Virus record (IMG/VR): IMGVR_UViG_3300027899_000001
Location: 1-64,000 of that record
Reading direction: 5' to 3' (one strand)
Length of the DNA: 64,000 nt
This document shows, one piece after another, positions 13,501-62,548 of the stretch; position 1 is the stretch's first letter, and every line of letters starts with the position of its first letter. Position numbers and translations under genes: made by a program. The notes below the pieces were generated by a model, which was not told the origin of the DNA, ran no database searches, and worked only from the letters and a program-made list of their open reading frames with translations.

Positions 13501-16500
13501 ATGGGAAACAATAGATAAAGTTAATTCAACTATTACAGGAGGAAATACTGTTTTATTTAAGCGTGGTAGCACATGGCGTAATCAACAAATAAGACCTGTT
13601 GCTGGTTCAGCAGGAGCTTACACGACTTATGGAGCATATGGAACTGGAGCAAAACCAAAAATTTTAGGTTCTTTAACTGCAAATTCAGGATGGACTAATG
13701 TTAGTGGTAATATATGGCAAACTACCGGATGGACAAAAGATGTGGGAAATATCATTTTTAACAATGAACAAAGCTGTGGTCGTAAATTCATGACTGCTAC
13801 ACCTACACTTACTACTCAGGGGGATTTTTGGTACGATTACGTGAATGACAGAGTACGAATGTATTCTGTAGGAAATCCTGCATCTTATTATACTAATATT
13901 GAATTTGCTTTAAGTCAAGATGCTGTTGTTACAAGTTATAATGCTCCATATATAATCATTGAAGATTTAGACTTCCGTTACTGGGGAAATTGTGTTATAC
14001 AGAATGCTCGTAATTATAGTATTTATCGTAGATTAGATATAAGTTACATAGGTGGTGGAGATGCAGGAGAAACGCAAGGCGCTGCCTGGTATGATACACG
14101 ATGGGGTAATGGAATTCAGATGTGGGAAGGCGACGGATCTTATATTACAGTAGAAAGTTGTAAAATTGATCAAGTTTATGATGCTGGTATTTCACCTCAA
14201 GGCCAAGCGGGTTCTTGGACTATGCATGATATTTTTATAAGAAATAACATTGTAACTAATTGCGAGTATAATTTTGAATTTTGGTTAAGGGCTGGAGCCA
14301 CAGCTTACAATATCTATGTTGAACATAATGTATTTGCTTATGCTGGATATGGGTTTGCACATAATCAACGTCCAGATGCAATTCAAGGGCATAATTTGCA
14401 GATGGGAGGCATGCAAGCTACCAGAAATAATATTTATTTACGTAATAATATTTTTTATATGTCTTTGAATTATAATTATAGTGCATGGTGGTATAATCCT
14501 GGGCCAGGAACAACTCCTCCGGGTCCAAGTACTTATGATGATCTATATAATATCACATTTGATTATAATTTATATTACACTCCGGGCGTATATATAGGTT
14601 TTTTTGATGCACTTCCTACTATATTTAATACATTTGCACAATGGCAAGCAGCTTTTCAAGTAGATGAATCACACGGAAAGGGTGTTGATCCATTATTCGT
14701 TGATCCAGCAAATGGAGATTTTCATTTACAACCGGGTTCTCCTGCCATTGCAGCCGGATTAGCAGTAGCAGGAGTAACAACAGATTTTGATGGAGTTTCT
14801 TATGCAAGTACTCCATCAATGGGAGCGTTGGAATATGTTAGTCCTACTAATAATACTTATTATGTAAAAAATGGAGGAAATGATAATTTAAATGGATTAT
14901 CTGATTCTACAGCATGGGAAACTATATCTAAAGTAAATTCATTTATTAAAGGTGGTGATAAGGTTTTATTCAAACGCGATAGTGTTTGGCGTAATGAAGC
15001 TATATCTGTTGTTAATGGTTCAGCTGGAGCTTATACCACTTATGGAGCATATGGAACTGGGGCAAAACCTCGTATATTAGGCTCTGTTCAATTAAACTCT
15101 GGATGGACAAATGTAAGTGGTAATATATGGCAAAATAGTAATGCTGCTGTGTTAGCTAAACAAGTAGGAAATCTTATTTTTAATAATGAACAAAGTGTAG
15201 GTGTAAAAGTTGCCTCTGAAGCATTATTAAACGCACAGGGCAGATTTTATTGGAATTTTAGTACAGGTGTATTAAGAATGTACTCTGTAGGCAATCCTGC
15301 TCTTTATTACTCTAACATTGAAGCAGCTTTACAACAACAGACGGCTGATGTGTACGGACATTCATATATTAAGTTTGAAAATCTTGATTTTAGATATAGC
15401 GGTGAAGGGACTATTTTTGGGGATAGTAATTATATACAAGTGTATGATTGCAATATAAGCTATAACGGAGGAGCTTATACAGATGTAGGAGGGGGCACAA
15501 GAATAGGAGGAGGAATTGGTACATGGGATAATGCATCATATTGGGAAATATTAAGATGTAGGATTAGTAACGAATATGATGCAGGAATAACCATGCAAGG
15601 GACTGGTGTTACATTAATTCATGATATGATAATAAGAAATAATATTATTGAAAAATGTGAATATAATTTTGAATTTTGGGAAAGACCCAATACTGGACAA
15701 ATGTATAATATATGGTTTGAACACAATACGTTAGCATATGCAGGATATGGTTGGTCTCACACTCAACGTCCAGATTCTCAACAAGGGCATAGCATATATA
15801 TGGGAGGAATGTCAGTTCAAAGACATGACATATACATAAGAAATAATATTTTTTATTCAAGTATCAATGATAATATAGCGTTCTCTTATTACAATGATGG
15901 TTCTTATGATGATTTAATAAATATCACCTTTGATTATAATTTATATTACAATCCTGGAGTTAATACTGCTTTTGCAGATGCTCATGATATCATTTTTCTT
16001 ACATTTGCAAATTGGCAAGCAGCTGTAAGTGTAGATGAATCGCATGGAATAGGAACTAATCCTTTATTTGTTAATGCTGCTGGAGGTGATTATCATCTAA
16101 GTATAGGTTCGCCCGCTATTGCAGCTGGATTAGCAGTAACAGGAGTAACTACTGATTTTGATGGAGTTTCTTACAACTCTTCACCTGCAATGGGCGCATA
16201 TGAATATGTTCCAGGATCTTCTAACATATATTACATAGATCCAACTGGCGCAGATTCTGCAGGAAGAAATGGATCAAATGTAGCAGGACAACAATGGCTT
16301 ACACTTGCATATGCTATAAGTCGTGTTACTACAGGCGATACTATTCATGTTAATCCGGGAACATATAATATAAGTTCGCAAATTACTGTTCCTATTGGAA
16401 TAAGTATAGAAGGAGATGGAATTACTTCAATTTTACGTTCTACATATACAAGTGGTCCTACATTAAATTTAGCTAATTCAGTATTGGGAAGTGGAAATCA

Positions 16501-19500
16501 ATATATAGCTAATATTAAAATGGATGGTGTTTCTACTACCGCGCATACTGCTGTAAATGTATATAGAAGATCAAATGTATCAATATATAATTGTACATTT
16601 GTAGATTTTTTACAATGGGGTGTAAGATATAGAGGGCAAGATGCTGGTGAAGTAGAACCTACTTTGTGGGCAACTGGTAATTCATTTCATGATAATTCTG
16701 TTAATAATTGCTCTATGTATTATTATCCAGGTGGAGATGCTGATGTTGATAAACGAAACGGAAATGGACAAGGTCTTTTAGAAATAAGTGAACAACAAGG
16801 AATGAGAGTATATAATAATACTCTTATACAAACAGGTAGAACTACTTGGCATAATGGATACTGTATAAAAGGCATAATGGGTTATAATAAAGATATTAAG
16901 ATTTATAATAATATCATGACTAAAGCTGCATATACAGAAGCATATGGAATAACATGGGATTTTGTTTTAGAATTTTGGGAAAGTCGAGGAGGAATAGAAG
17001 TTTATGGAAATACTATTACTGGTGGATCTCTTGATTTTTCAGGAAGTGGAACTGAAAATGATACTACAACTCAAAAAGGAATATATGATTATGCTGTATG
17101 GATTCATGATAATTCTATAATGAATACTACTTTAAGCGCATACTCTAATACTCATGGAATATTAATAGAACAAAGCGCAACAGATGTAATTATTGAAAGA
17201 AACTGGATAGAAAATGTATGGGCTGGAATTTATTTTCCACTTACACCAAAAAGTAATCCTATGTATGGAACTATATTTAATAACATAACTGTAAGATATA
17301 ATGTAATAAAAAATGTAGGAACATCTGGAAATAATTTACAAGGGTTTGGAATTCATGGGCCTTATGCTGTTACAAATATGACAGGCAATAACATTCAATA
17401 TTATAATAATACTATAATTGGAAGAAGTGGTTCTAATTCATGGGGTATTCAAATTCCTGTATTAGGAACTTTAACAAATGTGTATGTAAGAAATAATATT
17501 GTACAAGGATTCTCAGGTGCTGGAAGTGCTGGTATATATTGCTATAACTATGGTACAGTTAACTATGCTTGGGTGCAATATAATAATTTGTATCAATGCG
17601 CAAATAGTAATGCACCATTATATGGTTTAAGTATATCTAATCTTACATCAGAAAGTGCGTATGCTGGTACAGTTCCTCCATTCGTATCTACTACAGATTA
17701 TCATTTAACTACAAGTAAAGATGGAATATATATAACTTCAGGCTTGACAGATAAAGATGGCGTTACGCCATCAAATCCTCCAGACATAGGAGCATATGAA
17801 TATGCACTAGTAAATGGTGTTTATTATATAGATCCAACTGGCGCAGATTCTGCAGGAAGAAATGGATCAAATGTAGCAGGACAACAATGGCTTACACTTG
17901 CATATGCTATAAGTCGTGTTACTACAGGCGATACTATTCATGTTAATCCGGGAACATATACAGTAACTACTCAAACAAGTGTACCAATAGGCATAAATAT
18001 TGAAGGAAATGGCATAGGTAGTTCTATTATTAGATCGCATTATATAGCAGGTGATGGAAATCTAAATAACGCATGTTTAGTGTTATCTGGAGGAACAAAT
18101 ACTGATCAACATATTAGTGGACTTACATTAGATGGAGATTCTTTATGGGGAGATAACGCTATAGTTGTATATAATAGAAGTAATGTAAGCATTTATAATT
18201 GTCAAGTAGTTAATTTTTTAACTCAAGGAATTAGATTTGATGGAAGTTCTCCAAGTTTAAGTGTAAATAACAGTCTTTATGGTTGCACAATAACTAATTC
18301 TGGCGGTATAGATACATCTGATAGACGAGCTAATATATTTATAAGAAATAATACAAGCCTACGTATTTATAATAATACTCTTAATCAAACTCTTAGAGTT
18401 TCAAATACAGGGTTAGGAATTAGATTAGAAGATGGAGTTTATGGTTGTAAGATATACAATAATTATTTATATGGAATACAACCTGGCGCTGATTGGTCAT
18501 TTACAATGGAATGTTGGTGTGCTGATACTGTTAATGGTGTAGGTTGGGGATTAGAAATATATGGAAATACTATAACAGGATTAATTGACTTTGGTTCTGG
18601 AGTAAGTAAAGGAACAGGTTCTTATACTTATGCTGTAAGTTTTCATGATAATGTAATGGGAACAGATGTTGCTCATGCTGTTACAGATTATCAACACGGT
18701 TTATTATTTGAATTAAATGGAAGCGATATTATTATTTATAATAACGAATTTAAATTTCTTGATCGTCCTATTTATTTTACATCAGGACAATTTAGTAATA
18801 TAGATATACATTCTAATATAATTAGAAATGTTCCAGCCAGTTATTCTGATGGAGCAGGTATTTTATTTATCGGAAGTGGGTCGCCTACATCAGAACAGAA
18901 TGTATATATACGAAATAATACTATTATTGCTCATACTGGTGGAGTAGGACCGGCACAATATGGCATTTTATTTGATGCAAGAGGTACAGTAAATAATTTT
19001 TACATACAAAATAATATTATTCAAGGATTTTCTTCTGCTCCGTATGAAAGTTATGGAACCACAGGATCTATAGGAACTTTGGTTGTTCAAAAAAATGTTC
19101 TTTATCTTAATGGAAATAGTAATAATATTAAATTAACATTAACACCTACATCTCTTACAAATGATTTAGGGCTTAAATATGATCCAGTGTTTGTAAATGC
19201 AGCTGCATATAATTTTCATATACAATCAACATCGCCTGCATTAAGAGCAGGTTTATATGTAGGATTAGTTTTTGATTATGATGATCAGTTTTGGAATAAT
19301 CCACCTTCTATAGGAGCATATGAATATATGGGTGCTCTTCCTTCATCTATTCCATCAGTTACAACTTCTTCTATTACTAATATTCTTGCAACTACTGCTT
19401 CTGGCGGTGGTACTGTAACACATGACGGAAGTTTAGCATTATCTTCTAGAGGTATATGTTGGAATACTTCAACAAATCCAACTGTGTTAAATTCTTCAAC

Positions 19501-22500
19501 AAATAATGGAGTATCAGAAGGGGTATTTACGAGTTCACTTGTAGGATTAAATCCAAGTACTCATTATTATGTTAGAGCATATGCTGCAAATTCATTAGGA
19601 GTAGGATATGGAGCAAATGTTGAATTTGATACTCTAAAAAATACATCAATTCCAATTGTTACTACTACAGCAATTACTGATATAAGTACTTTTACTGCAA
19701 CTGGAGGCGGAAATGTAACTCATGATGGAAGTTTAGCAGTAACTTCAAAGGGTGTTTGTTGGTCTGTTTTACCAAGTCCTACTATTGATAATACATTTAA
19801 TACTAGTGGTACAGGAGAAGGGTCGTATGTTAGTTATTTAACTGGATTAAATGCATCAACACATTATTATGTAAGAGCATACGCTATTAACGCAGAAGGA
19901 GTTGGATATGGATATGATGTTTCATTTAATACATTAGGTTCAGGAATTTCTTTAGTTAATGGACTTATGGGATATTGGAAATTAAATGAAACAACAGGAA
20001 GCGCGTTAGATTCTGTAGGAAGCATAAATGGTGCCGTTTTTGGTGCTACACAAGGAGTTCCTGGTAAAATAAGTACTGCATATCGTTTTAATGCAGCAAC
20101 AAATAGTTATATTGATTTAGGAATTTCTTGTAAACCTACAACTGCAATATCTTTTGCCGTATGGCTTAATCCAAGCACATTTAACGATATTTATTCAGGA
20201 GTAATAAATAATACTACTTGGGTTAATCCGACAGAACAATATGGCTATAATGTATTTCTTGATAGTAGTAAAATGTTATTTGAATTATTTAATGGCGATG
20301 TTCAAAATTCATTATGGAGCAATGCTACAATAACACCAAATACTTGGCATTTTATTGTTGGAACATGGGATGGCGCAAAAATGAAACTTTATATTAATAA
20401 TGTACTTGATGCAAGCCAAGCTAGAACAACTACTATAGGATACGATCTAGCATCTGTTTTAAGATTTGGTTCTCATTCTGCACCATATGATTATACAGGT
20501 GTTATTGATGAAATAGGAATTTGGAATAGAGCTTTGACTATTTCTGAAGTATCTACATTATATAATAGTAGTAACGGATTAACTTATCCATTCGATGCTT
20601 CAACCAATATTAGTATTCCTACTGTTACAACTTCTTCAGTTACAAATATATTTACAACTAGTGCATCTTGTGGTGGTAATGTAACTCATGATGGAAGCAC
20701 TGCAGTAACAGCTAAAGGTGTATGTTGGAATACATCAATAAATCCAACTGTATTAAATTCTTCAACAAATAATGGAACAGGAACAGGAGTATTTACAAGC
20801 GCAATAACAGGATTAAATCCGAGCACACATTATTATGTTAGAGCTTATGCAACTAACGCAGTTGGAACTGCTTATGGTTCTAATGTTCAATTTGATACAT
20901 CTACATCTCCTATAGTAACCTCAATTCCTACCGTTACAACTTCTTCAGTTACAAATATATTTACAACTAGTGCATCTTGTGGTGGTAATGTAACTCATGA
21001 TGGAAGCACAGCAGTAATAGCTAAAGGTGTATGTTGGAGTATTTTATCAAATCCAACTATTAGTAGTGCATTAACTAATGATGGCACCGGTGAGGGATCA
21101 TTTACAAGCGCAATAACAGGATTAAATCCGAGCACACATTATTATGTTAGAGCTTATGCAACTAATGCAGTAGGAACGGGATATGGAAATCAAATTACAT
21201 TTGATAGTAGTATTCCAGTTTCAGTTATTTCAACTTATTACATAAATGCTATAAATGGAAATGATGCTAGTGCAGGAACTACACAAAATACAGCCTGGAA
21301 AACAGTTGCAAAAGTTAATGCATATACATTTATTCCAGGAGATACTGTTTTATTTAGAAGAGGTGATACATGGAATGAAAGATTGGTTGTAGCACAAAGT
21401 GGTATAAGTGGATATCCTATAACATATTCTAATTATGGTGTTGGCGCTAATCCTATATTTAATGCACAAAATATTCGTCCTAATGGAATTAGAATTGAGG
21501 GCGTATCTTATATAATCATTGATGGTATTGATACCATAAATAGTACTGAAGAAGGAATTGTAGTATTTGACTGGAATGAAATAGGATCATCTAATGTAAC
21601 AATTAAAAACCTTACATCTTTTAATAATGTAAAGGCTGGAATTTATATGTCTATACCTTATGGAACAATAATGGATTGTTCTACAATAAATAATGGTCTT
21701 ACTACACAACATCATGGTATATATATGGGAAGATCTTCTATCTTAAATAATATATATGCTGATAATTGGTTAATAGAAAGATGCCATTCATATGGCAATA
21801 CCGGTGCAGGATATCAAATTTATAATAGTGGATCCGGCACACTAAGATATTCTGTAACAAATAATAATGGGGGCACATCTGGTGGATGGGGTGCAGTAAT
21901 TGATACATTAGCTCCTAATAAAAATGTAAATGTTTATTATAATGTTTTATATAACAATGATTATTGGGGATTAGAAGTAGCTAATCTTAATAGTGGTGAT
22001 GCTGTAAACATTTATAATAATGTTATGTATAATAATGGACAAGCAGATTATGGCGCAGGTTTACATGTAGCTAACAATGATAATGTAACTGATGGCTCAA
22101 TTAAAATAAAAAATAATTTAATTTTTTCAAATGTATATTATGATTTTCAACAATCACAAAGTATATCAAAATATACAGTATCTAATAATGATTATTGGAA
22201 ATCCTTTGGAAATATAATTGTATGGAATTCAATTACATATCCACAAACTCAATTTGCATCATATCAAGTTGCATCTGGCGATATATTATCAATATCAAAA
22301 GATCCTTCAGTTGTAAATGCTGCAGCTTATAATTTTAATTTAACTTCTTCATCTTCATGTAAAAATGCAGGAGTAAATGTAGGATTAACTACAGATTTTA
22401 TTGGAACTGGAATAATAAATTTCCCAGATATTGGTGCTTATGAATTTATAGAACTTAATATTTCAACCCCTACTGTTACTACATCTTTAATAACAAATAT

Positions 22501-25500
22501 TGCAATTACTAGTGCATCTTGTGGTGGTAATGTATCTCATGATGGAAGTACAGCAGTTACAGCTAAAGGTATTTGTTGGAATACTTTTTCAAATCCTACA
22601 ATATACGATTCTTCTACAACAAATGATGGAATAGGAGAAGGAATATTTTATAGCGCGCTAACTAACTTAAATCCAAGTACTCATTATTATGTTAGAGCTT
22701 ATGCAACAAATGAAATGGGAACAGCATATGGAAACGAAGTAACTCTTGATACAAGTAAAAATTCATATTATGTAAATATTGTTAATGGAAATGACTTAAA
22801 TAGTGGAACTACAGAAAATACTGCGTGGAAAACTATAACAAGAGTTAACACAGCATTAACAACTCTTCCTGCTGGTTATGCTATACGTTTTAGAAAAGGA
22901 GATACATGGTATGGAACAATAAATATTGGAAAATCCGGAGCTGCTAATTTTCCAATTACTATAGGTTCTTATGGAACTGGCGCTAATCCAGTAATAACTG
23001 GATTTACTACAGCATCCTCATGGACAAATGCAGGAAATGGTATATATTATACGTCTTTAACTGCGGAATCTTCAACGTTAATGGTATCATTAGATGGTTA
23101 TCAAGCACAAATGGGTAAATGGCCTGCAATAGGTTGGAATCATATAGAAAGTACAAATGGAACAAGTACAATAACTGACACAGCTATAACAAGTACTTAT
23201 AACTGGATAGGTGCACAAGTAGTTATAAGAAAAAATCGTTGGGTTATTGATAAATGTATAATAACTAATCAAAGTGGAAATACAATAACATACAATGATC
23301 CAGATGCGGGATCTTATCAAGCAGTAGCAGGATGGGGATATTTTATACAAGCAGATTTAAGTACATTAGTATCTTATGGAAATTGGTATCATGATCATAG
23401 TGCAAATAGATTTTATATGTATTTTGGCGCTGAACTTCCCGCAAATCATGTTGTAAAAATAAGTTCTTTAGATAGATGTATTTATAATAGTAATTATGAT
23501 CATATAACAATTGATGGTCTTACGCTTGAAGGTGCTAACATAGATGGCTACTATGGATATAATAGTGCATCAAATCATATTATTCAAAATTGTAATATTG
23601 GTTTTTCTGGTCGTCATGGAATATATTTACAATATCCATCAAATTGTATTGTACAAAATTGTAGTATTTATAGTTCAAATGATCATGCCGTTTATTCAAC
23701 TTCTCAAGTTGGTGTAAGTGGACCGTTTACTATTAGTAGAAATACTATCACAAATACTTTTATATTTCCTGGAACTACAGATAGCGGTGATAATCATGGA
23801 AATGCATTATATTCTTGTGCAGATAATACATTAATTCAAAATAATAGAATTCTTAATACAGGACATCTTCCAATTAATTGGGGAGGAACTAATTCAATAA
23901 TAAGAAATAATATTATAGATACATTTTGTTTTACAACTGATAATGGTGCGGGTATTTATACTTATGGTGATAGAAATACTGGAAAACAAGTTATTGGTAA
24001 TATAGTATTAAATGCTATTAGTGCTACAGACGGTACCGATATAAATGATCCTTTATATCCTAATACTCATTTTTCTCATGGCTTATATACTGATGGATTT
24101 AGTGCACATGTTTCATTTATAGGAAATACTGTTGGCAATGTAAATGCATTTGGTATTCGTATGAGTGCTAGTACTAATATTGTACTTAAAGATAATACAT
24201 TTTATCAATCTTATGGATTTGTTTCAGTTTTAAGATCTGATACTCTTATAAGAGATATAAGTGTGTATAATAATGTATTTATATCTAATAATTTAGATGA
24301 ACATTCTCCAGAAGGTATTAAATATGAATCTTATTTTACTCCTATTTCTAGTTCAACTGCAACATCTGAAATTCAAGGATGGGGCTATTGGAATAATAAT
24401 TATTATTATACAAATACTGAAACTGCAATGGTAGTATATGGTACAGATACTGGTCAATGTGCTCCAAAAAGTTTAGAAAAATGGAAAACAAAATATAATC
24501 ATGACACAACTTCTGTATTTTATCCTAAGTTTTCAAGCTATACAATAAATTCATCAGGAACGAACATGTTATCTAATTCTAGATTTGATTCAGATATTAA
24601 TAACTGGACAGGAACATCATTAGCTTCAATATCTTGGGTATCTAATTCTAGTCTTGATGGTGGTGCATTGAAACTTAGAACAAATAAAAAAGATTATAAT
24701 TGGAATTGGTGGGATTCTGATGATTATTTCTATTCATCAATTGGCGCAGTGGAAAGTAATAAAACATATATAATTAAGCTTTTAGGAAAATCTGAATTAG
24801 CAAATAAAACTATTTCTGTTCGTATGTATCAAACAAGTACGGGAAATTCTATTCAACAATTTTTTACTTTACCAAGCACAAGTGTCAATAAAGAGATATT
24901 ATTCAAATATCCTCAAACAGATCCTGCTGCTTCATTACGTTTTGCTGGTGGAGACGGTGATGCATCAGTATATTTTGATAATATTTATTGCTATGAAGCA
25001 AGTGTAAATCTTATAGACGTTGCTGCTACTAATTTTCATTTTATTTATAATACATCAGAAAATATAAATAAGACATATAGTTTAAGCGCTCCAATGAATG
25101 ACATAAAAGGTAATTATTATGCTGCTGGAATGTTAGATTTATCTACATGGAATTCATTAGTTCTTTTTGGAACAGGTACTGTTACTGAAGGAAGCACTGC
25201 AATTACATATGTTCCTACTGTTACTACATCTCCAGTTACAAATATATTTTTAACTAGTGCTTCTACTGGAGGTAATGTAACTAATGGTGGCGGATTAACT
25301 GTTACATCAAGAGGCGTATGTTGGAATACATCTATAAATCCAACTATATTAAATTCTTCAACAAATAATGGAACAGGAACCGGAGTATTTACAAGTGCAT
25401 TAAGTAACTTAAATCCAAGTACTCATTATTATGTTAGAGCTTATGCTGAAAATTCACAAGGTATAGGATATGGTTCTAATGTTCAATTTGATACGTCACC

Positions 25501-27163
25501 AAATATTTCACTTGCAACTGTTACAACTGGAACAATATCTAATATATTTACAACTAGCGCTTCTTCAGGAGGTACAGTTGTACATGATGGAAGTACATTA
25601 GTTACAGCTAGAGGAGTATGTTGGAATAATTTAATTAATCCTACAATATTAAATAGTAAATCTATAGATGGTACCGGAGAAGGTGTATTTACAAGTGCTT
25701 TAATTAATTTGAATGCAAGTACACATTATTATGTTAGGGCATATGCAACTAATGCGGTTGGAACTGCTTATGGTTCTAATGTTCAATTTGATACAAGTAC
25801 ATTAGATGTCTCCATTAGTATTTCGCTTCCTGTTGTTAGTACAATTGCAGTAACAAACATATTATTAACTAGTGCTTCTTGTAGATGTGATATAACATCA
25901 GATGGCAGTGCTAGTGTTACAGCTAGAGGTGCATGTTGGAATACATCAATAAACCCAACAGTTTCTAATTCTCACACAGTAGATGGATCTGGAACAGGAA
26001 TATACACAAGTTCTTTATTAGCATTAAATCCAAGCACACACTATTATGTTAGAGCTTATGCTACAAACGTAGCAGGAACAGCATATGGACTCAATGTTCA
26101 ATTTGATACTAATGCTATTTCCGTTCCTACTATATTTACAAATATTATAACAGATATTAGTTTATTTACAGCAACTGGAGGAGGAAATGTAACTCATGAT
26201 GGAAGTTCTGCTGTAATAACAAAAGGAATATGTTGGTCAATTTCTTCAAATCCTACAATCTTAAATCCGTCAACAAATGATGGAAGTGGTACAGGTTCTT
26301 ACATTAGTTATTTAACAGGATTAAATTCAAGCACTTATTATTATGTTAGAGGTTATGCTACAAATTCTGCAGGTGTTGGCTATGGACAAGTTGTAACATT
26401 TAGTACTTTATCAGCACCAGGAAATTCTTTATTTAGTGGGCTTATGGGATATTGGGCATTAGATGAAATTTCTGGACCTGTGTTAGATTCTTATGGAAGT
26501 ATAAATGGAACAAATTATGGAGCAACGCCAAATGTTCCTGGAAAACTTAATACTGGATATTATTTCGATGCATTAGAACATGATTATATTTCATTTGGAA
26601 ATGTATGTAAACCAACAGCAGGTTTAAGTTTTTCTATGTGGATAAAGGCTCCCGCTCAAAATGATATATTTGCCGGTGTAATAAATAATAATTATTGGTA
26701 TAGCGCCGGAAATCAGGCAGGCTATAATATTTTTATAGATAGTAGCAAATTATTGTTTGAATTATCTAATGGCGCATCAACTTCTTTATATAGTAATAAA
26801 CTAGTTGATGATAATGAATGGCATTTTGTAGCTGGAACTTGGGATGGTTCAATAATGAAAATTTATATTGATAGTTCTGTTGCTGATGCTAGTTTAAGTA
26901 GAACAACTCCATTGGCATATGATGTAACATCAACATTGCGTTTTGGATCTCATTCTGCACCATACGATTATACAGGTATTCTTGATGAAGTTGGAATATG
27001 GAATAGAGCATTAACTCCAACAGAAATAGGTACTTTATATAATGATGGAAATGGTTTAGGATATCCATTTGCAACTCAGGAAGTTAGTACATCATTACGT
27101 TTCTTAACAAATGATGGAAAATACTTAACCTCGAATGATAAAATGATATTCGCAAATACATAA
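10592..27163 (+). CDS. Giant 5523-aa mosaic protein: about 8 right-handed beta-helix modules (one PL9-like), 11 FN3-like repeats and 2 LamG domains
   Basis: Eleven PTVTT...GGNVT.DG...VT..GVCW...NPT...YYVRAYA.N..G..YG repeats; beta-helix NN ladders with GAYEY ends; two GIIDE(I/V)GIWNRALT-type LamG ends; hydrophobic N-terminus. Confidence 0.85.
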   Translation: MKSIKRLILTIILTFVLGVQLLMAILTVTGQTIINSDTTWNGYYVDRYEPMTFTFSNNSITSQNYSNYMLQAGDEDIQPTNNNLAGEVITGNRLTWNGTDMTSICHGVFTGCNINVVIKYNYLEKVPMGLIRKSASNMVNTSGGVAYNILNKTFIGTVVKGISNVNIYNNTYYSDRTFANTQYGRALIDVYTNTDLVPNSVAHNTKIKNNIFYTKYQINNIRVLDNESLIGFESDYNLFYCESGTPMFEISGTQITFAQWQALGYDTHSVVVNPNFIDFVNFVPTTRLNYGTNLGSTWQTGLSTSAVWIVGSTPTTSDQNGTWQVGARVYASSATAPTVTTTAVTSITSTTAISGGNVTSDGGSAVTARGVCWNTSTNPTIANSKTSNGTGTGSYSSSLTGLSNGVTYYVRAYATNSVGTAYGSNVSFVAENAVAGTYYVSTTGNDANSGTISQPFFTLNKAWTVIGPGDIVYVRGGTYQYLTSQECVGKNGTAGNLIKIWAYPGETPVITKAVGWTYTHRAGIYFVGSYFHWKGIEVSGFTQIDDNEYAGFNVDDGTNHNIFELLNIHHNGGSNRLINQDCDDNLVLNCDFHHNYDPLTTVPSAYGNADGMAANPRAGTTNTIRGCRFWSNCDDGLDLYGANGLVIVDKCWAWSNGYREDGVTKGGDGNGIKLGGTTGDYSTTHLRTVTNSLAFHNRNAGFTQNVARCISHIYNNTAYHNADGADVYNLGFEFEETSIVHILRNNVAHANQHPTNLQANYGNCITSNNTWNGLVTVTDADFTTISSTGVDGSRQSDGNLPALSFLHLITGSDLIAAGTNVGLITDGDGVAWNNPPSMGAYEYVSGSVVIPTVTTTAVTSITSTTAISGGNVTSDGGSAVTARGVCWNTSTNPTIANSKTSNGTGTGSYVSSLTGLSNGVTYYVRAYATNSVGTTYGSNVSFVAANSAPGTYYVKNGGNNNLDGLSDATAWETIDKVNSTITGGNTVLFKRGSTWRNQQIRPVAGSAGAYTTYGAYGTGAKPKILGSLTANSGWTNVSGNIWQTTGWTKDVGNIIFNNEQSCGRKFMTATPTLTTQGDFWYDYVNDRVRMYSVGNPASYYTNIEFALSQDAVVTSYNAPYIIIEDLDFRYWGNCVIQNARNYSIYRRLDISYIGGGDAGETQGAAWYDTRWGNGIQMWEGDGSYITVESCKIDQVYDAGISPQGQAGSWTMHDIFIRNNIVTNCEYNFEFWLRAGATAYNIYVEHNVFAYAGYGFAHNQRPDAIQGHNLQMGGMQATRNNIYLRNNIFYMSLNYNYSAWWYNPGPGTTPPGPSTYDDLYNITFDYNLYYTPGVYIGFFDALPTIFNTFAQWQAAFQVDESHGKGVDPLFVDPANGDFHLQPGSPAIAAGLAVAGVTTDFDGVSYASTPSMGALEYVSPTNNTYYVKNGGNDNLNGLSDSTAWETISKVNSFIKGGDKVLFKRDSVWRNEAISVVNGSAGAYTTYGAYGTGAKPRILGSVQLNSGWTNVSGNIWQNSNAAVLAKQVGNLIFNNEQSVGVKVASEALLNAQGRFYWNFSTGVLRMYSVGNPALYYSNIEAALQQQTADVYGHSYIKFENLDFRYSGEGTIFGDSNYIQVYDCNISYNGGAYTDVGGGTRIGGGIGTWDNASYWEILRCRISNEYDAGITMQGTGVTLIHDMIIRNNIIEKCEYNFEFWERPNTGQMYNIWFEHNTLAYAGYGWSHTQRPDSQQGHSIYMGGMSVQRHDIYIRNNIFYSSINDNIAFSYYNDGSYDDLINITFDYNLYYNPGVNTAFADAHDIIFLTFANWQAAVSVDESHGIGTNPLFVNAAGGDYHLSIGSPAIAAGLAVTGVTTDFDGVSYNSSPAMGAYEYVPGSSNIYYIDPTGADSAGRNGSNVAGQQWLTLAYAISRVTTGDTIHVNPGTYNISSQITVPIGISIEGDGITSILRSTYTSGPTLNLANSVLGSGNQYIANIKMDGVSTTAHTAVNVYRRSNVSIYNCTFVDFLQWGVRYRGQDAGEVEPTLWATGNSFHDNSVNNCSMYYYPGGDADVDKRNGNGQGLLEISEQQGMRVYNNTLIQTGRTTWHNGYCIKGIMGYNKDIKIYNNIMTKAAYTEAYGITWDFVLEFWESRGGIEVYGNTITGGSLDFSGSGTENDTTTQKGIYDYAVWIHDNSIMNTTLSAYSNTHGILIEQSATDVIIERNWIENVWAGIYFPLTPKSNPMYGTIFNNITVRYNVIKNVGTSGNNLQGFGIHGPYAVTNMTGNNIQYYNNTIIGRSGSNSWGIQIPVLGTLTNVYVRNNIVQGFSGAGSAGIYCYNYGTVNYAWVQYNNLYQCANSNAPLYGLSISNLTSESAYAGTVPPFVSTTDYHLTTSKDGIYITSGLTDKDGVTPSNPPDIGAYEYALVNGVYYIDPTGADSAGRNGSNVAGQQWLTLAYAISRVTTGDTIHVNPGTYTVTTQTSVPIGINIEGNGIGSSIIRSHYIAGDGNLNNACLVLSGGTNTDQHISGLTLDGDSLWGDNAIVVYNRSNVSIYNCQVVNFLTQGIRFDGSSPSLSVNNSLYGCTITNSGGIDTSDRRANIFIRNNTSLRIYNNTLNQTLRVSNTGLGIRLEDGVYGCKIYNNYLYGIQPGADWSFTMECWCADTVNGVGWGLEIYGNTITGLIDFGSGVSKGTGSYTYAVSFHDNVMGTDVAHAVTDYQHGLLFELNGSDIIIYNNEFKFLDRPIYFTSGQFSNIDIHSNIIRNVPASYSDGAGILFIGSGSPTSEQNVYIRNNTIIAHTGGVGPAQYGILFDARGTVNNFYIQNNIIQGFSSAPYESYGTTGSIGTLVVQKNVLYLNGNSNNIKLTLTPTSLTNDLGLKYDPVFVNAAAYNFHIQSTSPALRAGLYVGLVFDYDDQFWNNPPSIGAYEYMGALPSSIPSVTTSSITNILATTASGGGTVTHDGSLALSSRGICWNTSTNPTVLNSSTNNGVSEGVFTSSLVGLNPSTHYYVRAYAANSLGVGYGANVEFDTLKNTSIPIVTTTAITDISTFTATGGGNVTHDGSLAVTSKGVCWSVLPSPTIDNTFNTSGTGEGSYVSYLTGLNASTHYYVRAYAINAEGVGYGYDVSFNTLGSGISLVNGLMGYWKLNETTGSALDSVGSINGAVFGATQGVPGKISTAYRFNAATNSYIDLGISCKPTTAISFAVWLNPSTFNDIYSGVINNTTWVNPTEQYGYNVFLDSSKMLFELFNGDVQNSLWSNATITPNTWHFIVGTWDGAKMKLYINNVLDASQARTTTIGYDLASVLRFGSHSAPYDYTGVIDEIGIWNRALTISEVSTLYNSSNGLTYPFDASTNISIPTVTTSSVTNIFTTSASCGGNVTHDGSTAVTAKGVCWNTSINPTVLNSSTNNGTGTGVFTSAITGLNPSTHYYVRAYATNAVGTAYGSNVQFDTSTSPIVTSIPTVTTSSVTNIFTTSASCGGNVTHDGSTAVIAKGVCWSILSNPTISSALTNDGTGEGSFTSAITGLNPSTHYYVRAYATNAVGTGYGNQITFDSSIPVSVISTYYINAINGNDASAGTTQNTAWKTVAKVNAYTFIPGDTVLFRRGDTWNERLVVAQSGISGYPITYSNYGVGANPIFNAQNIRPNGIRIEGVSYIIIDGIDTINSTEEGIVVFDWNEIGSSNVTIKNLTSFNNVKAGIYMSIPYGTIMDCSTINNGLTTQHHGIYMGRSSILNNIYADNWLIERCHSYGNTGAGYQIYNSGSGTLRYSVTNNNGGTSGGWGAVIDTLAPNKNVNVYYNVLYNNDYWGLEVANLNSGDAVNIYNNVMYNNGQADYGAGLHVANNDNVTDGSIKIKNNLIFSNVYYDFQQSQSISKYTVSNNDYWKSFGNIIVWNSITYPQTQFASYQVASGDILSISKDPSVVNAAAYNFNLTSSSSCKNAGVNVGLTTDFIGTGIINFPDIGAYEFIELNISTPTVTTSLITNIAITSASCGGNVSHDGSTAVTAKGICWNTFSNPTIYDSSTTNDGIGEGIFYSALTNLNPSTHYYVRAYATNEMGTAYGNEVTLDTSKNSYYVNIVNGNDLNSGTTENTAWKTITRVNTALTTLPAGYAIRFRKGDTWYGTINIGKSGAANFPITIGSYGTGANPVITGFTTASSWTNAGNGIYYTSLTAESSTLMVSLDGYQAQMGKWPAIGWNHIESTNGTSTITDTAITSTYNWIGAQVVIRKNRWVIDKCIITNQSGNTITYNDPDAGSYQAVAGWGYFIQADLSTLVSYGNWYHDHSANRFYMYFGAELPANHVVKISSLDRCIYNSNYDHITIDGLTLEGANIDGYYGYNSASNHIIQNCNIGFSGRHGIYLQYPSNCIVQNCSIYSSNDHAVYSTSQVGVSGPFTISRNTITNTFIFPGTTDSGDNHGNALYSCADNTLIQNNRILNTGHLPINWGGTNSIIRNNIIDTFCFTTDNGAGIYTYGDRNTGKQVIGNIVLNAISATDGTDINDPLYPNTHFSHGLYTDGFSAHVSFIGNTVGNVNAFGIRMSASTNIVLKDNTFYQSYGFVSVLRSDTLIRDISVYNNVFISNNLDEHSPEGIKYESYFTPISSSTATSEIQGWGYWNNNYYYTNTETAMVVYGTDTGQCAPKSLEKWKTKYNHDTTSVFYPKFSSYTINSSGTNMLSNSRFDSDINNWTGTSLASISWVSNSSLDGGALKLRTNKKDYNWNWWDSDDYFYSSIGAVESNKTYIIKLLGKSELANKTISVRMYQTSTGNSIQQFFTLPSTSVNKEILFKYPQTDPAASLRFAGGDGDASVYFDNIYCYEASVNLIDVAATNFHFIYNTSENINKTYSLSAPMNDIKGNYYAAGMLDLSTWNSLVLFGTGTVTEGSTAITYVPTVTTSPVTNIFLTSASTGGNVTNGGGLTVTSRGVCWNTSINPTILNSSTNNGTGTGVFTSALSNLNPSTHYYVRAYAENSQGIGYGSNVQFDTSPNISLATVTTGTISNIFTTSASSGGTVVHDGSTLVTARGVCWNNLINPTILNSKSIDGTGEGVFTSALINLNASTHYYVRAYATNAVGTAYGSNVQFDTSTLDVSISISLPVVSTIAVTNILLTSASCRCDITSDGSASVTARGACWNTSINPTVSNSHTVDGSGTGIYTSSLLALNPSTHYYVRAYATNVAGTAYGLNVQFDTNAISVPTIFTNIITDISLFTATGGGNVTHDGSSAVITKGICWSISSNPTILNPSTNDGSGTGSYISYLTGLNSSTYYYVRGYATNSAGVGYGQVVTFSTLSAPGNSLFSGLMGYWALDEISGPVLDSYGSINGTNYGATPNVPGKLNTGYYFDALEHDYISFGNVCKPTAGLSFSMWIKAPAQNDIFAGVINNNYWYSAGNQAGYNIFIDSSKLLFELSNGASTSLYSNKLVDDNEWHFVAGTWDGSIMKIYIDSSVADASLSRTTPLAYDVTSTLRFGSHSAPYDYTGILDEVGIWNRALTPTEIGTLYNDGNGLGYPFATQEVSTSLRFLTNDGKYLTSNDKMIFANT
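11599..11769 (+). repeat. 171-bp exact direct repeat (second copy 13141-13311)
   Basis: FN3 copies 1 and 2 are nucleotide-identical over this span by manual alignment. Confidence 0.85.
16235..16367 (+). repeat. 133-bp exact direct repeat (second copy 17828-17960)
   Basis: Identical N-caps (IDPTGADSAGRNGSNVAGQQWLTLAYAISRVTTGDTIHVNPGTY) of two otherwise divergent beta-helix modules. Confidence 0.85.
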
Positions 27164-27190: not shown

Positions 27191-28921
27191 ATGGCTGAAT
27201 CATGTCCAGATAACAATAAACCTTTAAGTGTTGCATATCCTGACACAACAAAAAGTTCAATAGTAGCAGATCCAAAAACTATATCTGCTGCTACTCCGTT
27301 ATATGATGTTGTGAATAAAATGTCCTCAGCAGCAAGAGATTATTCAGCAATAAATGGAGTAGTAAATCAATTACTTGGATATGATGTAAGATGGTTTAGA
27401 GCAATTCCACAACAACGTTCAAAAGATGTTATATTTCAAGAATATACATTGTCAAATGTTGAAGAACAACCATTATGTGTAAAAACAATTCTTCCCACAG
27501 GAATGCCGCCTGATAGCAAATATAATTTTGATTTAATGGGTCTTGAGTATGAAGTTCCTTTAGAAATACAAATTGATAAAAAATACTGGGAATCTATTGC
27601 AGGATTTGGATCAGCACCACAGAAAAAAGATATTGTATATTTTGTTATATCTAATAAATTATATGAAGTAGAATCTTCATATTTGTTCAGAGGATTTATG
27701 GAACAAGAAACAACATGGAAATGTAATCTTATTAAATATCAGCCAAAAGCTTCCAGAAAAGAATCTGCAGCACTTCAAGAAACTATTGATCAATACACTG
27801 TTAGCGTTGAAGAATTATTTGGTCAAGCAATTGATAATGATGTTGCAAAATTAGTAGATGATCAACAAATGAATGCACTCAATTCAACTTCTAAAGATAA
27901 ATATAAATCATTTGATGTATCATTGAATACTATTAACAAAACAATGAGTATATACGGAACTGTGGTTGCACAATCATTTTATGATATGCAATCTCCTATT
28001 TGGTATAATGCTGTAACATATAATACTGAAGATCTTCTCGGTACTACTTCAAATAGAGCAGTAATGGCTTGGATTCAACCTCGTACTATACCTGCAATTC
28101 ATAAAGAATACAATGTCAGTTCAATAACTCCAATTGTAGGAACATTAGATATTTCAACTATGTATCAATATGATGCATCTTTATATAGTGCTGCTAACTA
28201 TACTATAACACTTAACACTCCTATATCATTATCTAACATTCAAATAGGAAATACTGTAGTTGTATCTCGTCAAGGAGCTCTTAATTTTTATGCAAAAGTT
28301 GTAGCTATAAGTATAAATCCATTAAAACTTTATTGTGCAATAAACGCATTTGTTTTAGAAGATTTAAATACTATTAAATCAGATTGGAATATTCAAACCG
28401 GATATAAATTAATGCTCAAAGAACCTATTTCTGTTATAGATGGCGTTAATGATTTTGGCGAACATGTGTTATCTGTGAATATTTGTGCTAATCAATATAT
28501 TGCTATTAGTTATGGACATACTTGGAATGATAGTAATGATTCATATAACGCATATGTTGTAAGAATGGATGATAAATTAAATGATAGCGAATGGTATGGA
28601 ATTGTAGTAAATATTGGTAATAGCTGGAAACAATATAGTGCGTATGTTTGGAAAAGACACGATTCAGATAAAAATGCTAAGTTACAAAATATATTTTATG
28701 AAACTCTTAGGCTTTATCCAGAAGATATTGCAGTAAATCAATATTCGATAAACAAATCTCCTTCTTATTTAACTAATTTAAGATTATTTAATACAACAAT
28801 TGAGCAAGAAAAACAAAGTTTAGAGCTTCTTTCTTATTTTACTCGCGATGCCGATCAAGCTATAATTTTAGATAATGCAGATCCACTAATGCACATACCT
28901 TATATTTCACGTCAAAGATAA
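27191..28921 (+). CDS. Virion structural protein, possibly neck/head-closure (T4 gp14-like N-terminus) with C-terminal beta-sandwich
   Basis: PQKKDIVYF...LYEV...W.CNL.KY segment resembles head-closure proteins; lies in the structural operon before terminase. Confidence 0.45.
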   Translation: MAESCPDNNKPLSVAYPDTTKSSIVADPKTISAATPLYDVVNKMSSAARDYSAINGVVNQLLGYDVRWFRAIPQQRSKDVIFQEYTLSNVEEQPLCVKTILPTGMPPDSKYNFDLMGLEYEVPLEIQIDKKYWESIAGFGSAPQKKDIVYFVISNKLYEVESSYLFRGFMEQETTWKCNLIKYQPKASRKESAALQETIDQYTVSVEELFGQAIDNDVAKLVDDQQMNALNSTSKDKYKSFDVSLNTINKTMSIYGTVVAQSFYDMQSPIWYNAVTYNTEDLLGTTSNRAVMAWIQPRTIPAIHKEYNVSSITPIVGTLDISTMYQYDASLYSAANYTITLNTPISLSNIQIGNTVVVSRQGALNFYAKVVAISINPLKLYCAINAFVLEDLNTIKSDWNIQTGYKLMLKEPISVIDGVNDFGEHVLSVNICANQYIAISYGHTWNDSNDSYNAYVVRMDDKLNDSEWYGIVVNIGNSWKQYSAYVWKRHDSDKNAKLQNIFYETLRLYPEDIAVNQYSINKSPSYLTNLRLFNTTIEQEKQSLELLSYFTRDADQAIILDNADPLMHIPYISRQR

Positions 28922-28922: not shown

Positions 28923-29013
28923 GAATATATAAAATATAGTAGTTAGATTAATGCTAGAACATTAATCAACACTTGGATAGATTGAAATGCTGTCCTACTA
29001 TAATCTATATATT
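28923..29013 (+). ncRNA. Structured leader/inverted-repeat element A upstream of an HNH gene
   Basis: AATATATA..TATAGTAG pairs with CTACTATA..TATATATT; internal hairpin GATTAATG/CATTAATC; homologous to 55127-55213 with compensatory changes. Confidence 0.55.
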
Positions 29014-29034
29014 TTAAAATAACGGATAGAAATC

Positions 29035-29772
29035 ATGAATCATCAAAAAGTCTATGATGCTATAATTCAGAAAGCAAAATCTGAAAATAGAATTAAATTA
29101 CAAAAAAATCAAGAAGGTTATGTTTATTATGAAAATCATCATATATTACCAAAATGTTTAGGCGGAAGTAATGATGAAGAAAATTTAGTTTTATTAATCG
29201 CAAAAGAACATTTTGTTTGCCACAAATTACTTACATATATCTACAAAGAAAATATATCATTAATATATGCGTTTTTTATGTTATCTCATTTTGAAAAATA
29301 TAAAATATACATTTCATCAAGAGATTATGAAAATATAAGAAATTTAATTGCAATTACCCCTATAACTGATGAAAAAAGAATAAATTTAAAATTAGGTGTT
29401 AAAAAAAGAAAACCTATTTCAGAAAATACTCGTAAAAAGATGAGTGATTTAAAAAAAGGAAAAATACCTTGGAATAAAGGAAAAAAACATTCTGAAGAAT
29501 CAAAGAAAAAAATGAGTGAATCACAATTGAAACGTGAAAGTTTTTCGCAAAAAACACGGGAAAAAATGAGCGAATCACACAAAGGAAAACCCATAGGTAA
29601 AGGACGACAATTATCAAAAAAACATAAAGAAAATATAAGTAAATATAGAAAAGGAAAGATTGCAAATAATAAAGGAAAAATTGCTATATATAAAGATAAT
29701 AAAAAATATTTTATAAATGAAAATAGATTAGAAGAATATATACAAAAAGGCTATATTACAAAACAACGTTAA
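29035..29772 (+). CDS. Free-standing HNH homing endonuclease with NUMOD3-type repeats
   Basis: YYENHHILPKCLGGSNDEENLVLL.AKEHFVCH; KGKKHSEESKKKMSES repeats. Confidence 0.85.
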   Translation: MNHQKVYDAIIQKAKSENRIKLQKNQEGYVYYENHHILPKCLGGSNDEENLVLLIAKEHFVCHKLLTYIYKENISLIYAFFMLSHFEKYKIYISSRDYENIRNLIAITPITDEKRINLKLGVKKRKPISENTRKKMSDLKKGKIPWNKGKKHSEESKKKMSESQLKRESFSQKTREKMSESHKGKPIGKGRQLSKKHKENISKYRKGKIANNKGKIAIYKDNKKYFINENRLEEYIQKGYITKQR

Positions 29773-29774: not shown

Positions 29775-30173
29775 ATGAGAGCAAAATTCATATATGAAAA
29801 ATTTTCAGAAGATTCAGATCCTGTTCATGATTTAGGAATTGGTATAATGCATGCTATTAAACATTTTCTTACAAAAGAATCTCGATATAAAACAGAACCA
29901 ATCATATATCCTAAAGATTATTTATGGATGTGTGCAGCTGAAGAAAAAATAGACTATATTAAAGCTTTACTTAATATGGGTTATGATGTAAATGACGATG
30001 GATCTAGAGCTCTTCGTTGTGCTATAGTTACTCAAAATGCACCATTAGTAAAATTTTTATTACAAAAAGGCGCTGGATTTGAACCCAATGATAAATGGCA
30101 TCGTGATTGGTCTTATGAAACAGCTGAACGTAATGAAGAAATTACAAGATTATTGAAAGAATATAATATATAG
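29775..30173 (+). CDS. Ankyrin-repeat protein with shared EKF-SDP-DMGIG leader
   Basis: MRAKFIYEKFSEDSDPVHDLGIG leader; ALLNMGYDVN...ALRCAI...LVKFLLQKGA ankyrin-like repeats. Confidence 0.7.
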   Translation: MRAKFIYEKFSEDSDPVHDLGIGIMHAIKHFLTKESRYKTEPIIYPKDYLWMCAAEEKIDYIKALLNMGYDVNDDGSRALRCAIVTQNAPLVKFLLQKGAGFEPNDKWHRDWSYETAERNEEITRLLKEYNI

Positions 30174-30195: not shown

Positions 30196-30852
30196 ATGAA
30201 AATTCGAGAAGAACGAGAAGATTTAAGAAAAATGTTAGATAATTCTCCTGAAAAAATTAACAAAAATGTTGCAGTTACAGGAGAAGATATACCTGAATTA
30301 CAGCCAGAACCGTTAATGAATGTCAATCTTGGCGATGTTAAAAAACAATGTGAAAAAGAAGCACGAACAATGATAAAAAATGCCATCTCTTTTATGGTAC
30401 CTATGGATATGATTAAATCTAACAAATATCTAAAAGATAAATTTAAAGTAGATGTTATGTCATTAGCAGGTATGATTTATCAACTTAGAAGTAATGAAAT
30501 TATGCAAAAGGCTCTTATGGAACAAATTAACCTTGGCCTTACACATCCAAGATATTGGGAAGTATATTCTGGGATGTCAAAAACTATTGGAGATTTGAAT
30601 AAACAATTATTACAAACAGTAGAAGCTATACGAGAAACATATAGAAATTTTAAAAATGATGTTAAAGAACAAAGAACTGAAGCACTGGGTCCCCAAATGA
30701 ATAATTCTTCAGGTATGTTAACTGCTGGAGATGGAAGTGTAGTTACAAGAGGAACTAAGGAATTAATAAATCGCGTTAAACAATTTAAAAATGATAAAAA
30801 TAACGCTCAGTATATTGATTCGGAAAAATTAATTCCAAATATCCCCATATAA
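30196..30852 (+). CDS. Helical protein, candidate terminase small subunit
   Basis: Helical/coiled-coil 218-aa ORF directly upstream of terL, separated only by an HNH gene; the assignment is positional. Confidence 0.4.
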   Translation: MKIREEREDLRKMLDNSPEKINKNVAVTGEDIPELQPEPLMNVNLGDVKKQCEKEARTMIKNAISFMVPMDMIKSNKYLKDKFKVDVMSLAGMIYQLRSNEIMQKALMEQINLGLTHPRYWEVYSGMSKTIGDLNKQLLQTVEAIRETYRNFKNDVKEQRTEALGPQMNNSSGMLTAGDGSVVTRGTKELINRVKQFKNDKNNAQYIDSEKLIPNIPI

Positions 30853-30854: not shown

Positions 30855-31403
30855 ATGAATCATTTAAAAATTTATAATTCAATAATTGATAATGCTAAAT
30901 TAAAAAATAGAGTTAAATTTAACAAATCTAATGCAAATTATGTTTATTATGAAAATCATCACATTATTCCGAAGTGTTTAGGCGGAAATGGTAATAAAGA
31001 AAATTTAATTTTATTAACAGCAAAAGAACATTATGTATGTCATAAATTATTAACCTATATCTATAAAGAAAATAGAAAAATTGTTAATGCATTTCATAGA
31101 ATGACTTTTGATAAAAAAGGAAAACATAATATTTCATCAAGAGATTATGCTTATGCACGAGAATTAAAATCAAATACTCCCGTTTCTGAAGAATCAAAAG
31201 AAAAAAATCGTCAAACACATTTAAAAAACCCTCTTTACGAAGAAAAGAAACAAAAACAAAAAGAAAACAATTTTAGAGAAAATAATCCAATGTATGGAAG
31301 AAAACAGTCGAAAGAAACGATAGAAAAAAGAAAAAAAACTTGCGAAGAAAGATATGGAATAAATTGTTCTTTAAATTTTAGAAAAATAAATAAAATAAAA
31401 TAA
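30855..31403 (+). CDS. HNH homing endonuclease
   Basis: YYENHHIIPKCLGGNGNKENLILLTAKEHYVCH; NPMYGRKQSKETIEK tail. Confidence 0.85.
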   Translation: MNHLKIYNSIIDNAKLKNRVKFNKSNANYVYYENHHIIPKCLGGNGNKENLILLTAKEHYVCHKLLTYIYKENRKIVNAFHRMTFDKKGKHNISSRDYAYARELKSNTPVSEESKEKNRQTHLKNPLYEEKKQKQKENNFRENNPMYGRKQSKETIEKRKKTCEERYGINCSLNFRKINKIK

Positions 31404-44832: not shown

Positions 44833-45371
44833 TAAATTTTTTTGATTTTCATTGATTCGTCCAACGATTCAGGAACTAATTTATTTTCTTTAACTGGGCC
44901 TTTTTTTCTTTCCAGTCTTCTACTTGGAGTAACATCAGTTGCATCTGCATAATATTGTATTGGTTCTGGTATAATAAGTTTAACTGTTAAAGGATCTATT
45001 TTTATATTTCTTTGCGTTGCTTCATCTTGAATAACATAATATTTAATAGCACCATTATCAGTAATAATTATTTTATTAACAATACCTTTCACTTCTTTCT
45101 TTGATGGATTTGCGTTAGATCTTATAGGCTGTCCTGTAATAACTGAACCTATTTGTATTTGTGAAACTTGATCATTTGTAACTGTAGGCAATTGTTCTAA
45201 TGTATGATTAAGAGGTTTAATTTCATAAGTATACATTAAATTTGGCCCACCCATATTAGAGGCTCCACCGAATCCTCCACGAGAAGTTGCACCCATTCCA
45301 CCAATTCTTCCTGATGTAAATGAGAATCCAGCGCCGTAACCTTCTTTAAGTTTCTTTTTCTTCTTAATCAT
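44832..45371 (-). CDS. Hypothetical Gly-rich protein with SH3-like region (start moved to MIKKKKKLKEG)
   Basis: The promoter motif at 45391-45399 lies inside the longer ORF call, so the ATG at 45371 is preferred. Confidence 0.65.
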   Translation of the reverse strand: MIKKKKKLKEGYGAGFSFTSGRIGGMGATSRGGFGGASNMGGPNLMYTYEIKPLNHTLEQLPTVTNDQVSQIQIGSVITGQPIRSNANPSKKEVKGIVNKIIITDNGAIKYYVIQDEATQRNIKIDPLTVKLIIPEPIQYYADATDVTPSRRLERKKGPVKENKLVPESLDESMKIKKI

Positions 45372-55213: not shown

Positions 55214-55233
55214 TTAAAATAATAGAGGGAATC

Positions 55234-62234: not shown

Positions 62235-62284
62235 AGAATGAATTACTTTTATTTATATATTCTTTATGTCTAAATTGAATTGAC

Positions 62285-62434: not shown

Positions 62435-62466
62435 ATTAAAAGCAATATCTCTTTTATAAAGATTTG

Positions 62467-62545: not shown

Positions 62546-62548
62546 GAA

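Follow-up and report, generated by a model that had tools for sequence, protein, structure and literature searches.

A covarying structured leader of phage homing-endonuclease cassettes, one loop of which repeats the ribosome-binding region

Why do two homing-endonuclease genes in a freshwater jumbo phage carry the same elaborate fold between a promoter-like box and their start codons? The window analysed here is the first 64,000 nucleotides of the complete, 405,016-bp virus record IMGVR_UViG_3300027899_000001, which has direct terminal repeats and 28.8% G+C. The only sequencing run that contains it is a freshwater DNA metagenome, in which we saw only assembly breaks at endonuclease paralogues. 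An initial annotation, made from the sequence alone, proposed that two copies of a covarying three-way junction, each starting at a promoter motif and bounded by an outer inverted repeat, lie upstream of two HNH genes. It inferred an unrecognised HNH-associated RNA that could be a translational switch of the T4 type, an antisense pair, a ribozyme or an RNA partner of the nuclease. Every feature it listed is present in the sequence, so the observation holds. Its interpretation was partly supported: a conserved, covarying and unrecognised structured element next to a promoter-like box is confirmed, but the restriction to HNH genes is too narrow, and of the four functions the antisense pair fits best. 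The layout of both copies, from box to endonuclease gene, is given in Table 1; in both, the RBS region is purine-rich.

Table 1. Coordinates of the two element copies and of other features within the 64,000-nt window.
Position	Strand	Feature	Details
28923-28932	+	Copy A, phage promoter-like box GAATATATAA	Also the 5' arm of outer helix P0 (pairs with 29006-29014); scores 19.3 with a PWM built from 68 ORF-proximal sites
28935-29002	+	Copy A, core three-way junction	P1 28935-28942/28995-29002; J12 TTA 28943-28945; P2 28946-28953/28960-28967; J23 AA 28968-28969; P3 hairpin 28970-28989, region with GGAT; J31 CTGTC 28990-28994; covariance-model hits of 80.3 bits (R1) and 70 bits (R2)
28975-28981	+	Copy A, P3-loop core GGATAGA	Identical to the RBS core 49 nt downstream
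29006-29022	+	Copy A, 3' arm of P0, then conserved TAAAATAA	Inverted, imperfect promoter copy (minus-strand box scores 8.4); TAAAATAA at 29015-29022
29024-29034	+	Copy A, RBS region	Core GGATAGA 29024-29030 plus spacer AATC before ATG 29035
29035-29772	+	HNH + NUMOD3 homing endonuclease gene	245 aa; phrog_655; together with the element an insertion relative to related phages
55127-55137	+	Copy B, promoter-like box (55127-55136)	5' arm of P0, a perfect 11-bp inverted repeat with 55203-55213; box score 14.2
55138-55202	+	Copy B, core three-way junction	P1 55140-55145/55195-55200; J12 TAA; P2 55149-55154/55164-55169; J23 AA; P3 55172-55174/55187-55189; J31 CTGTC 55190-55194; covariance-model hit of 61.9 bits
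55176-55182	+	Copy B, P3-loop core AGAGGGA	Identical to the RBS core 48 nt downstream
55204-55213	-	Copy B, inward-facing promoter-grade box GAATATATAA	3' arm of P0; score 13.1; candidate start region for an antisense transcript that would carry the complement of the P3 loop but not of the RBS
55215-55233	+	Copy B, TAAAATAA and RBS region	TAAAATAA 55215-55222; RBS core AGAGGGA 55224-55230; spacer ATC
55234-55998	+	HNH + NUMOD3 homing endonuclease gene	254 aa; lies antisense between minus-strand genes; 3' end overlaps gene 55987-56760 by 12 nt
10592-27163	+	Single ORF of 5523 aa	Many internal repeats (beta-helix-like and repeated T/S-rich domains); directly behind a consensus box at 10572
27191-28921	+	Conserved 576-aa gene	Precedes copy A
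29775-30173	+	Member of a multi-copy gene family	Has ankyrin repeats
30855-31403	+	Third HNH + NUMOD3 gene of the window	Neither box nor junction; starts 3 nt after the stop of ORF 30196-30852, so it may be translationally coupled
45128-45135	+	Third exact GCTGTCCT	Inside a minus-strand coding region with none of the surrounding motif; a chance match
57428-58060	-	Sigma-70-family gene	
62244-62556	-	Permuted (two-piece type) tmRNA	Rfam RF04321, 64.5 bits; ARAGORN predicts the tag peptide GENSYALQMAA*

Each copy folded better than shuffled sequence on both strands, the minus strand somewhat better than the plus strand (plus z -3.0 and -2.9, minus z -4.4 and -4.7). To test the structure comparatively we collected homologues. 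MAFFT alignments of all copies were structurally wrong, so a covariance model was seeded from 11 equal-length members with a hand-drawn structure and iterated. A pattern search and two rounds of covariance modelling identified seven copies in this genome, all on the plus strand, with CTGTC at 28990, 55190, 98089, 126406, 178548 and 271089, plus a variant with GTGTC at about 82040. A pattern scan of viral contigs, scored with the models, gave 33 distinct elements in all; three more came from later loci and ten more from metagenome contigs, making 45 distinct sequences with complete leaders, 7 of them in this genome and the rest in related viral and metagenome contigs. HNH relatives outside this phage clade carried no element. 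In an unrelated 32-kb phage contig, the spacer between a terminase-like gene and an HNH gene gave a weak, unconfirmed hit (22.6 bits; locus L108, 1156-1216, minus strand; L numbers denote loci outside this genome) with a poor P3 and in the reverse orientation relative to the HNH gene.

All three helices covaried strongly. Among 31 distinct homologues, 93.3% of cells were standard pairs, against 35-58% when the 3' partners were slid by 1-3 columns (35-62% in slid controls overall); 17 of 20 pairs had changes on both sides, and the covariation score was 0.623 against 0.174 in shuffles (0 of 500). That alignment was fitted to the model, but RNAalifold predicted the same three helices on its own, with 14 of 16 pairs compensated, and the metagenome set, which played no part in model building, repeated the result (93.8% paired; 0.648 against 0.186). 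About 11 junction bases were invariant or nearly so: the closing G-C of P1, the linkers T-N-A and AA, and CTGTC. The exceptions were the CA and AG linkers of L076 and L131, and the GTGTC of L131. The octamer GCTGTCCT shared by the two window copies shrinks across the family to CTGTCC, that is, CTGTC plus the first base of the 3' strand of P1 (P1').

No known RNA family accounted for this structure. At gathering threshold the only Rfam 15 match in the window was the permuted tmRNA, and at E<=10 nothing was found at the element in the four loci searched, with models including hammerhead, twister, twister-sister, pistol, hatchet, HEARO and c4 antisense RNA. ARAGORN likewise recognised only the tmRNA in the window. 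The architecture, about 60-68 nt with three helices of free sequence around about 11 conserved junction bases, is typical of small ribozymes and aptamers such as the hammerhead and the purine riboswitch, but the junction (G-UNA / AA / CUGUC-C) fits none of them, does not match the hammerhead core on direct reading, and comes with no conserved kissing loops. A new self-cleaving or processing ribozyme, or a junction bound by a phage or host protein, could mature, cap or stabilise the endonuclease mRNA, as the GIR1 lariat-capping ribozyme does upstream of a homing-endonuclease gene (HEG) in twin-ribozyme introns. This reading is neither supported nor excluded and we consider it unlikely; beyond the architecture nothing speaks for it. 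Functional RNAs usually tolerate G.U pairs, which are avoided here, and this reading does not explain the loop/RBS identity described below.

We next asked what the element goes with. All 45 elements precede HEGs of three unrelated kinds or their decayed remnants: HNH + NUMOD3 (phrog_655), GIY-YIG + NUMOD3 (phrog_314), and C2H2 zinc finger + DUF7487, a PD-(D/E)xK-like endonuclease (phrog_15137/3339). The ORFs of L060 and L064 are truncated, and in L196 (430-490, minus strand) the junction and a recognisable RBS copy remain while the ORF is reduced to ATG GGT TGA. One leader type can serve different families; for example, loop AGAGGGA occurs with HNH in copy B and L076, and with GIY-YIG in copy C, L047 and L056. 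Other HNH, GIY-YIG and DUF7487-type genes of the same genome lack the element, including the third HNH gene of the window, which follows the preceding ORF by 3 nt, and the genes at 238690, 267929 and 364832, which sit directly behind a plain box. The short leader of a GIY-YIG gene at genome position 339914-339950 (+) reads, after the box, like the 5' strand of P1, TAA and the start of P2 (AAAAGTAG-TAA-GTTTTATG), and may be the remnant of an element fused to the start codon. The sharing of the element among three nuclease folds argues against an RNA partner or guide of the nuclease, like the HEARO/omega RNA of IscB; adjacency to nuclease genes only is all that favours it, and we regard it as very unlikely.

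The element is part of the inserted cassette. Relatives place the conserved 576-aa gene 4-8 nt from the MRAKF... gene, or directly before the next conserved gene; box, junction and HNH gene of copy A are therefore one insertion, and the element is its 5' edge. A multi-copy gene family whose products start M(R/K)A(K/Q/H)..(E/N)EKF..SDP..D(L/M)GIG has members at window 29775-30173 (+), in the window 62253 (-) region, and at genome 81895, 148162, 178440, 219948, 267780 and 271018, often next to endonuclease cassettes. Copy A is co-oriented with its neighbours, but the other six of the seven cassettes in this genome lie antisense within runs of minus-strand genes, and their 3' ends overlap the convergent neighbour by 4-64 nt (window 55987-55998; genome 82916-82979, 98857-98884, 127219-127255, 179504-179538 and 271813-271816). 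In L203 and L196 a gene on the other strand, in L196 a conserved 658-aa structural gene, starts about 35 nt from P1 in a mirrored layout. Transcription across the junction in both directions is therefore plausible, and a structure that folds on both strands makes sense.

The consensus of the box, atgAATATATAAAATAAA, occurs at 68 ORF starts in the genome, including window positions 10572, 27166, 37347, 47142(-), 54393(-) and 62253(-). The ATG follows only 5-19 nt after the motif, usually without a Shine-Dalgarno sequence, and the phage encodes a sigma-70-family protein. We infer, without mapped start sites, that the box is a phage promoter giving leaderless or very short leaders. In 31 of 33 elements a promoter-grade box lies in the 5' arm of P0, 1-4 nt before P1. 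A phage promoter is similarly embedded in the 5' arm of the translational-control hairpins of T4-type HEGs (I-TevI, I-TevII, I-TevIII, segB, Aeh1 mobE, and seg43(25) of Aeromonas phage 25; PMC2988022), and, as with seg43(25), the helix ends just upstream of an RBS that it does not cover. Those are simple hairpins, however, whereas this is a three-way junction with conserved junction bases, a loop that copies the RBS, and a spread across three nuclease classes and many loci.

On the T4 logic, a sense-strand leader would tell read-through transcripts, which form P0, P1 and the full junction, from transcripts started inside the 5' arm, which cannot, and the freed 3' arm would change access to the RBS. 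The element does not sequester its RBS: this lies about 10-20 nt beyond the last helix, and its core has a predicted unpaired probability of 0.70 with the 5' arm present and 0.39-0.49 without it, so the RBS is predicted to be more open in read-through RNA, opposite to T4. In some copies CTGTCC or P1' pairs with the RBS once it is freed, but a cis switch of this kind, with CTGTCC or P1' alternating between loop and RBS, was rejected because predicted pairing was no better for cognate than for non-cognate partners (-5.59 v -5.73 kcal/mol, P = 0.73) and was near zero in several members. In six of the seven loci of this genome there is no co-oriented upstream gene to supply read-through. This reading, which explains neither the loop/RBS identity nor the avoidance of G.U described below, is unlikely, although somewhat less so than the other alternatives.

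Two further properties had not been noted in the initial annotation. First, pairing was almost purely Watson-Crick. Of about 610 stem cells, 572 were Watson-Crick, 2 were G.U and 7 were A.C, which would be G.U on the other strand; the rest were mostly A.A at helix ends. The second set had one G.U in 208 cells. Structured RNAs normally tolerate G.U, so its avoidance on both strands suggests that both strands must fold, or that the structure forms in DNA.

The symmetry would also suit an insulator at the cassette edge, a bidirectional terminator or RNA-processing or stabilising structure with a restart promoter in each arm, where transcription entering from either side would be stopped or cut and then re-initiated, letting cassettes sit in either orientation inside operons. 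P1 is flanked by an A-run upstream and often a T-run downstream, and both co-oriented (copy A) and antisense (copies B-G) cassettes occur. However, a scan found no canonical intrinsic terminator on either strand, the plus-strand T-run is absent in many members, and since a plain hairpin would suffice, the conserved P2 and P3, the junction bases and the loop/RBS identity would be left unexplained; an insulator is not excluded but seems unlikely. A DNA-level element, such as a cruciform or branched structure or an inverted-repeat-bounded segment used in recombination or cassette shuffling, appears more doubtful still, as conserved internal hairpins and single-stranded junction bases are hard to justify in DNA. 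An invertible switch, in which inversion would place the complement of the loop upstream of the RBS, was not supported: a scan of viral contigs for flipped copies returned only L196 and L203, both normal-orientation elements next to a gene on the other strand, and all 45 members have the same orientation relative to their HEG.

Second, the 5' part of the P3 loop is a direct repeat of the 7-11 nt that precede the start codon by 1-7 nt, the two copies lying 45-53 nt apart. The longest common block averaged 7.45 nt for cognate loop/RBS pairs and 4.3 nt for non-cognate pairs, and 39 of 45 elements had a perfect block (mean length 7.8 nt). The core differs widely between elements (GGATAGA, AGAGGGA, AAAGGTAAA, AGTTTGGA, GATTTGGA, ACTGTTA, AGAGTTAA, ATCGGT, AAGGACGT, AACAGTT, ACGATTAA and others), yet close relatives show paired changes at both sites (GGATAGA/GGGTAGA, AAAGGTAAA/AAAGGTGAA, AGAGTTA/ACTGTTA, AGTTTGGA/GATTTGGA), which cannot come from independent drift after an old duplication. 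The similarity often extends upstream, where the AA linker plus the 5' strand of P3 aligns with AA-TAAA of TAAAATAA. Three internal loop/RBS mismatches are loop A to RBS G, which an antisense U would tolerate, but they amount to perhaps two independent events, too few to count.

Other readings were considered and rejected. A target-site duplication of a small inserted element is contradicted by one repeat lying inside a loop rather than at an element end, and by helices P1 and P3 straddling the would-be boundaries. The spacing fits the matched take-off and landing sites, about 50 nt apart, of T4 gene 60-type translational bypass, but no ORF carries ribosomes into the loop: in copy A the upstream ORF stops at 28921, before the box, and copy B lies in a divergent non-coding spacer. 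Nor was a leader peptide conserved, as an ATG in the 3' strand of P3 exists only in the A-type, and frames and stops are not conserved.

We then asked what could pair with the repeat. No complement exists on the same strand, and a search of the genome for trans targets of the loops found only chance 10-mers, so only an antisense transcript of the element would pair with the ribosome-binding region. The complement of the loop is predicted to pair with the RBS at -10.3 kcal/mol for cognate and -4.6 kcal/mol for non-cognate partners (0 of 10000 permutations reached the cognate mean). Such an RNA would have to start between the two repeats, where the inverted box lies. On the minus strand this box was promoter-grade in 17 of 33 elements, intermediate in 6 and poor (score below 4) in 10 that still keep the loop/RBS identity, while only about 157 of 810,000 genome positions score as high as the promoter-grade boxes; it can, however, also be explained as the complement of the plus-strand promoter within P0. 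The variant GAATAAATAT, recurring in weaker boxes, also precedes a few ORFs.

The explanation we favour, tentatively, is that the element is the 5' regulatory module of free-standing HEG cassettes in a clade of freshwater jumbo phages, transcribed and folded on both strands. In this view the sense RNA is the HEG leader, and an antisense RNA, starting between the RBS and P1' at the inward-facing box or being the 5' UTR of the divergent neighbouring gene, would pair through its loop with the HEG translation-initiation region, as well as with the leader itself, and so hold down translation of the selfish nuclease. The variable loop/RBS pair would make each cassette type separately addressable and keep the several cassettes of one genome distinct. 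The analysis itself establishes the structure, its covariation and strict Watson-Crick character, the loop/RBS identity and its co-variation, the exclusive link with HEGs, and membership of the inserted cassette; that the boxes are promoters, that an antisense transcript exists and that it represses translation we infer from sequence alone. Several points weigh against this explanation. If transcription starts about 7 nt after the box, as the 5-9-nt box-to-ATG distances of other genes suggest, transcripts from either box would lack one arm of P1, yet P1 covaries strongly, and the full junction would then form only in read-through RNA. The conserved junction bases are not explained by simple antisense pairing, no canonical terminator bounds a small RNA, and since six of the seven HEGs in this genome already lie antisense to their neighbours, long antisense RNA may exist without any special loop.

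The logic has a precedent in par of plasmid pAD1 (RNA I/RNA II, a type I toxin-antitoxin system; PMC7472228), where DNA direct repeats transcribed in opposite directions give an antisense RNA complementarity to the target's translation-initiation site, and where repeat sequences vary between paralogues, which then do not cross-react. In par, however, the promoters are convergent across the whole locus and share a bidirectional terminator, and the target is a toxin peptide, whereas here the candidate antisense start lies inside the leader and no terminator was found. In IS10, the element's own transposase gene is held down by RNA-OUT, an antisense RNA made from an inward/outward promoter pair at the 5' end, with a loop that pairs with the RBS region. 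RNA-OUT overlaps the RBS it blocks; here the candidate antisense segment does not, and would reach the RBS through a duplicated copy 45-53 nt away.

Regulatory RNA structures at phage HEGs and antisense control of mobile-element nucleases are thus already known. The motif itself is absent from Rfam and was not found in full-text literature searches; its undescribed features are the three-way junction with a conserved core, the spread across nuclease families, and the loop that copies the RBS. Homing endonucleases are the commonest selfish genes of large phages, but how their expression is restrained is known almost only from T4. This element is a defined RNA (or RNA/antisense) motif of about 65 nt, or about 110 nt with its flanks, and its loop/RBS co-variation by identity is an unusual signature that makes the mechanism directly testable. 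If the mechanism holds, the element is a ready-made set of orthogonal scaffold-plus-address riboregulators.

A more far-reaching possibility, which we hold with somewhat less confidence, is a natural family of modular, mutually orthogonal riboregulators, in which a fixed scaffold folding on both strands presents a freely variable address loop that must match the ribosome-binding region of its own cassette, and which jumbo phages, or the selfish nucleases themselves, would use to throttle each homing endonuclease separately. Alternatively, the conserved junction could be the core of a new small ribozyme or ligand-binding RNA that matures endonuclease mRNAs.

The element also marks the 5' boundary of mobile cassettes, and the promoter-like consensus found alongside it, with its near-leaderless genes, helps to annotate this clade of uncultivated freshwater jumbo phages; within the window, one such consensus box directly precedes the 5523-aa repeat-rich ORF listed in Table 1.
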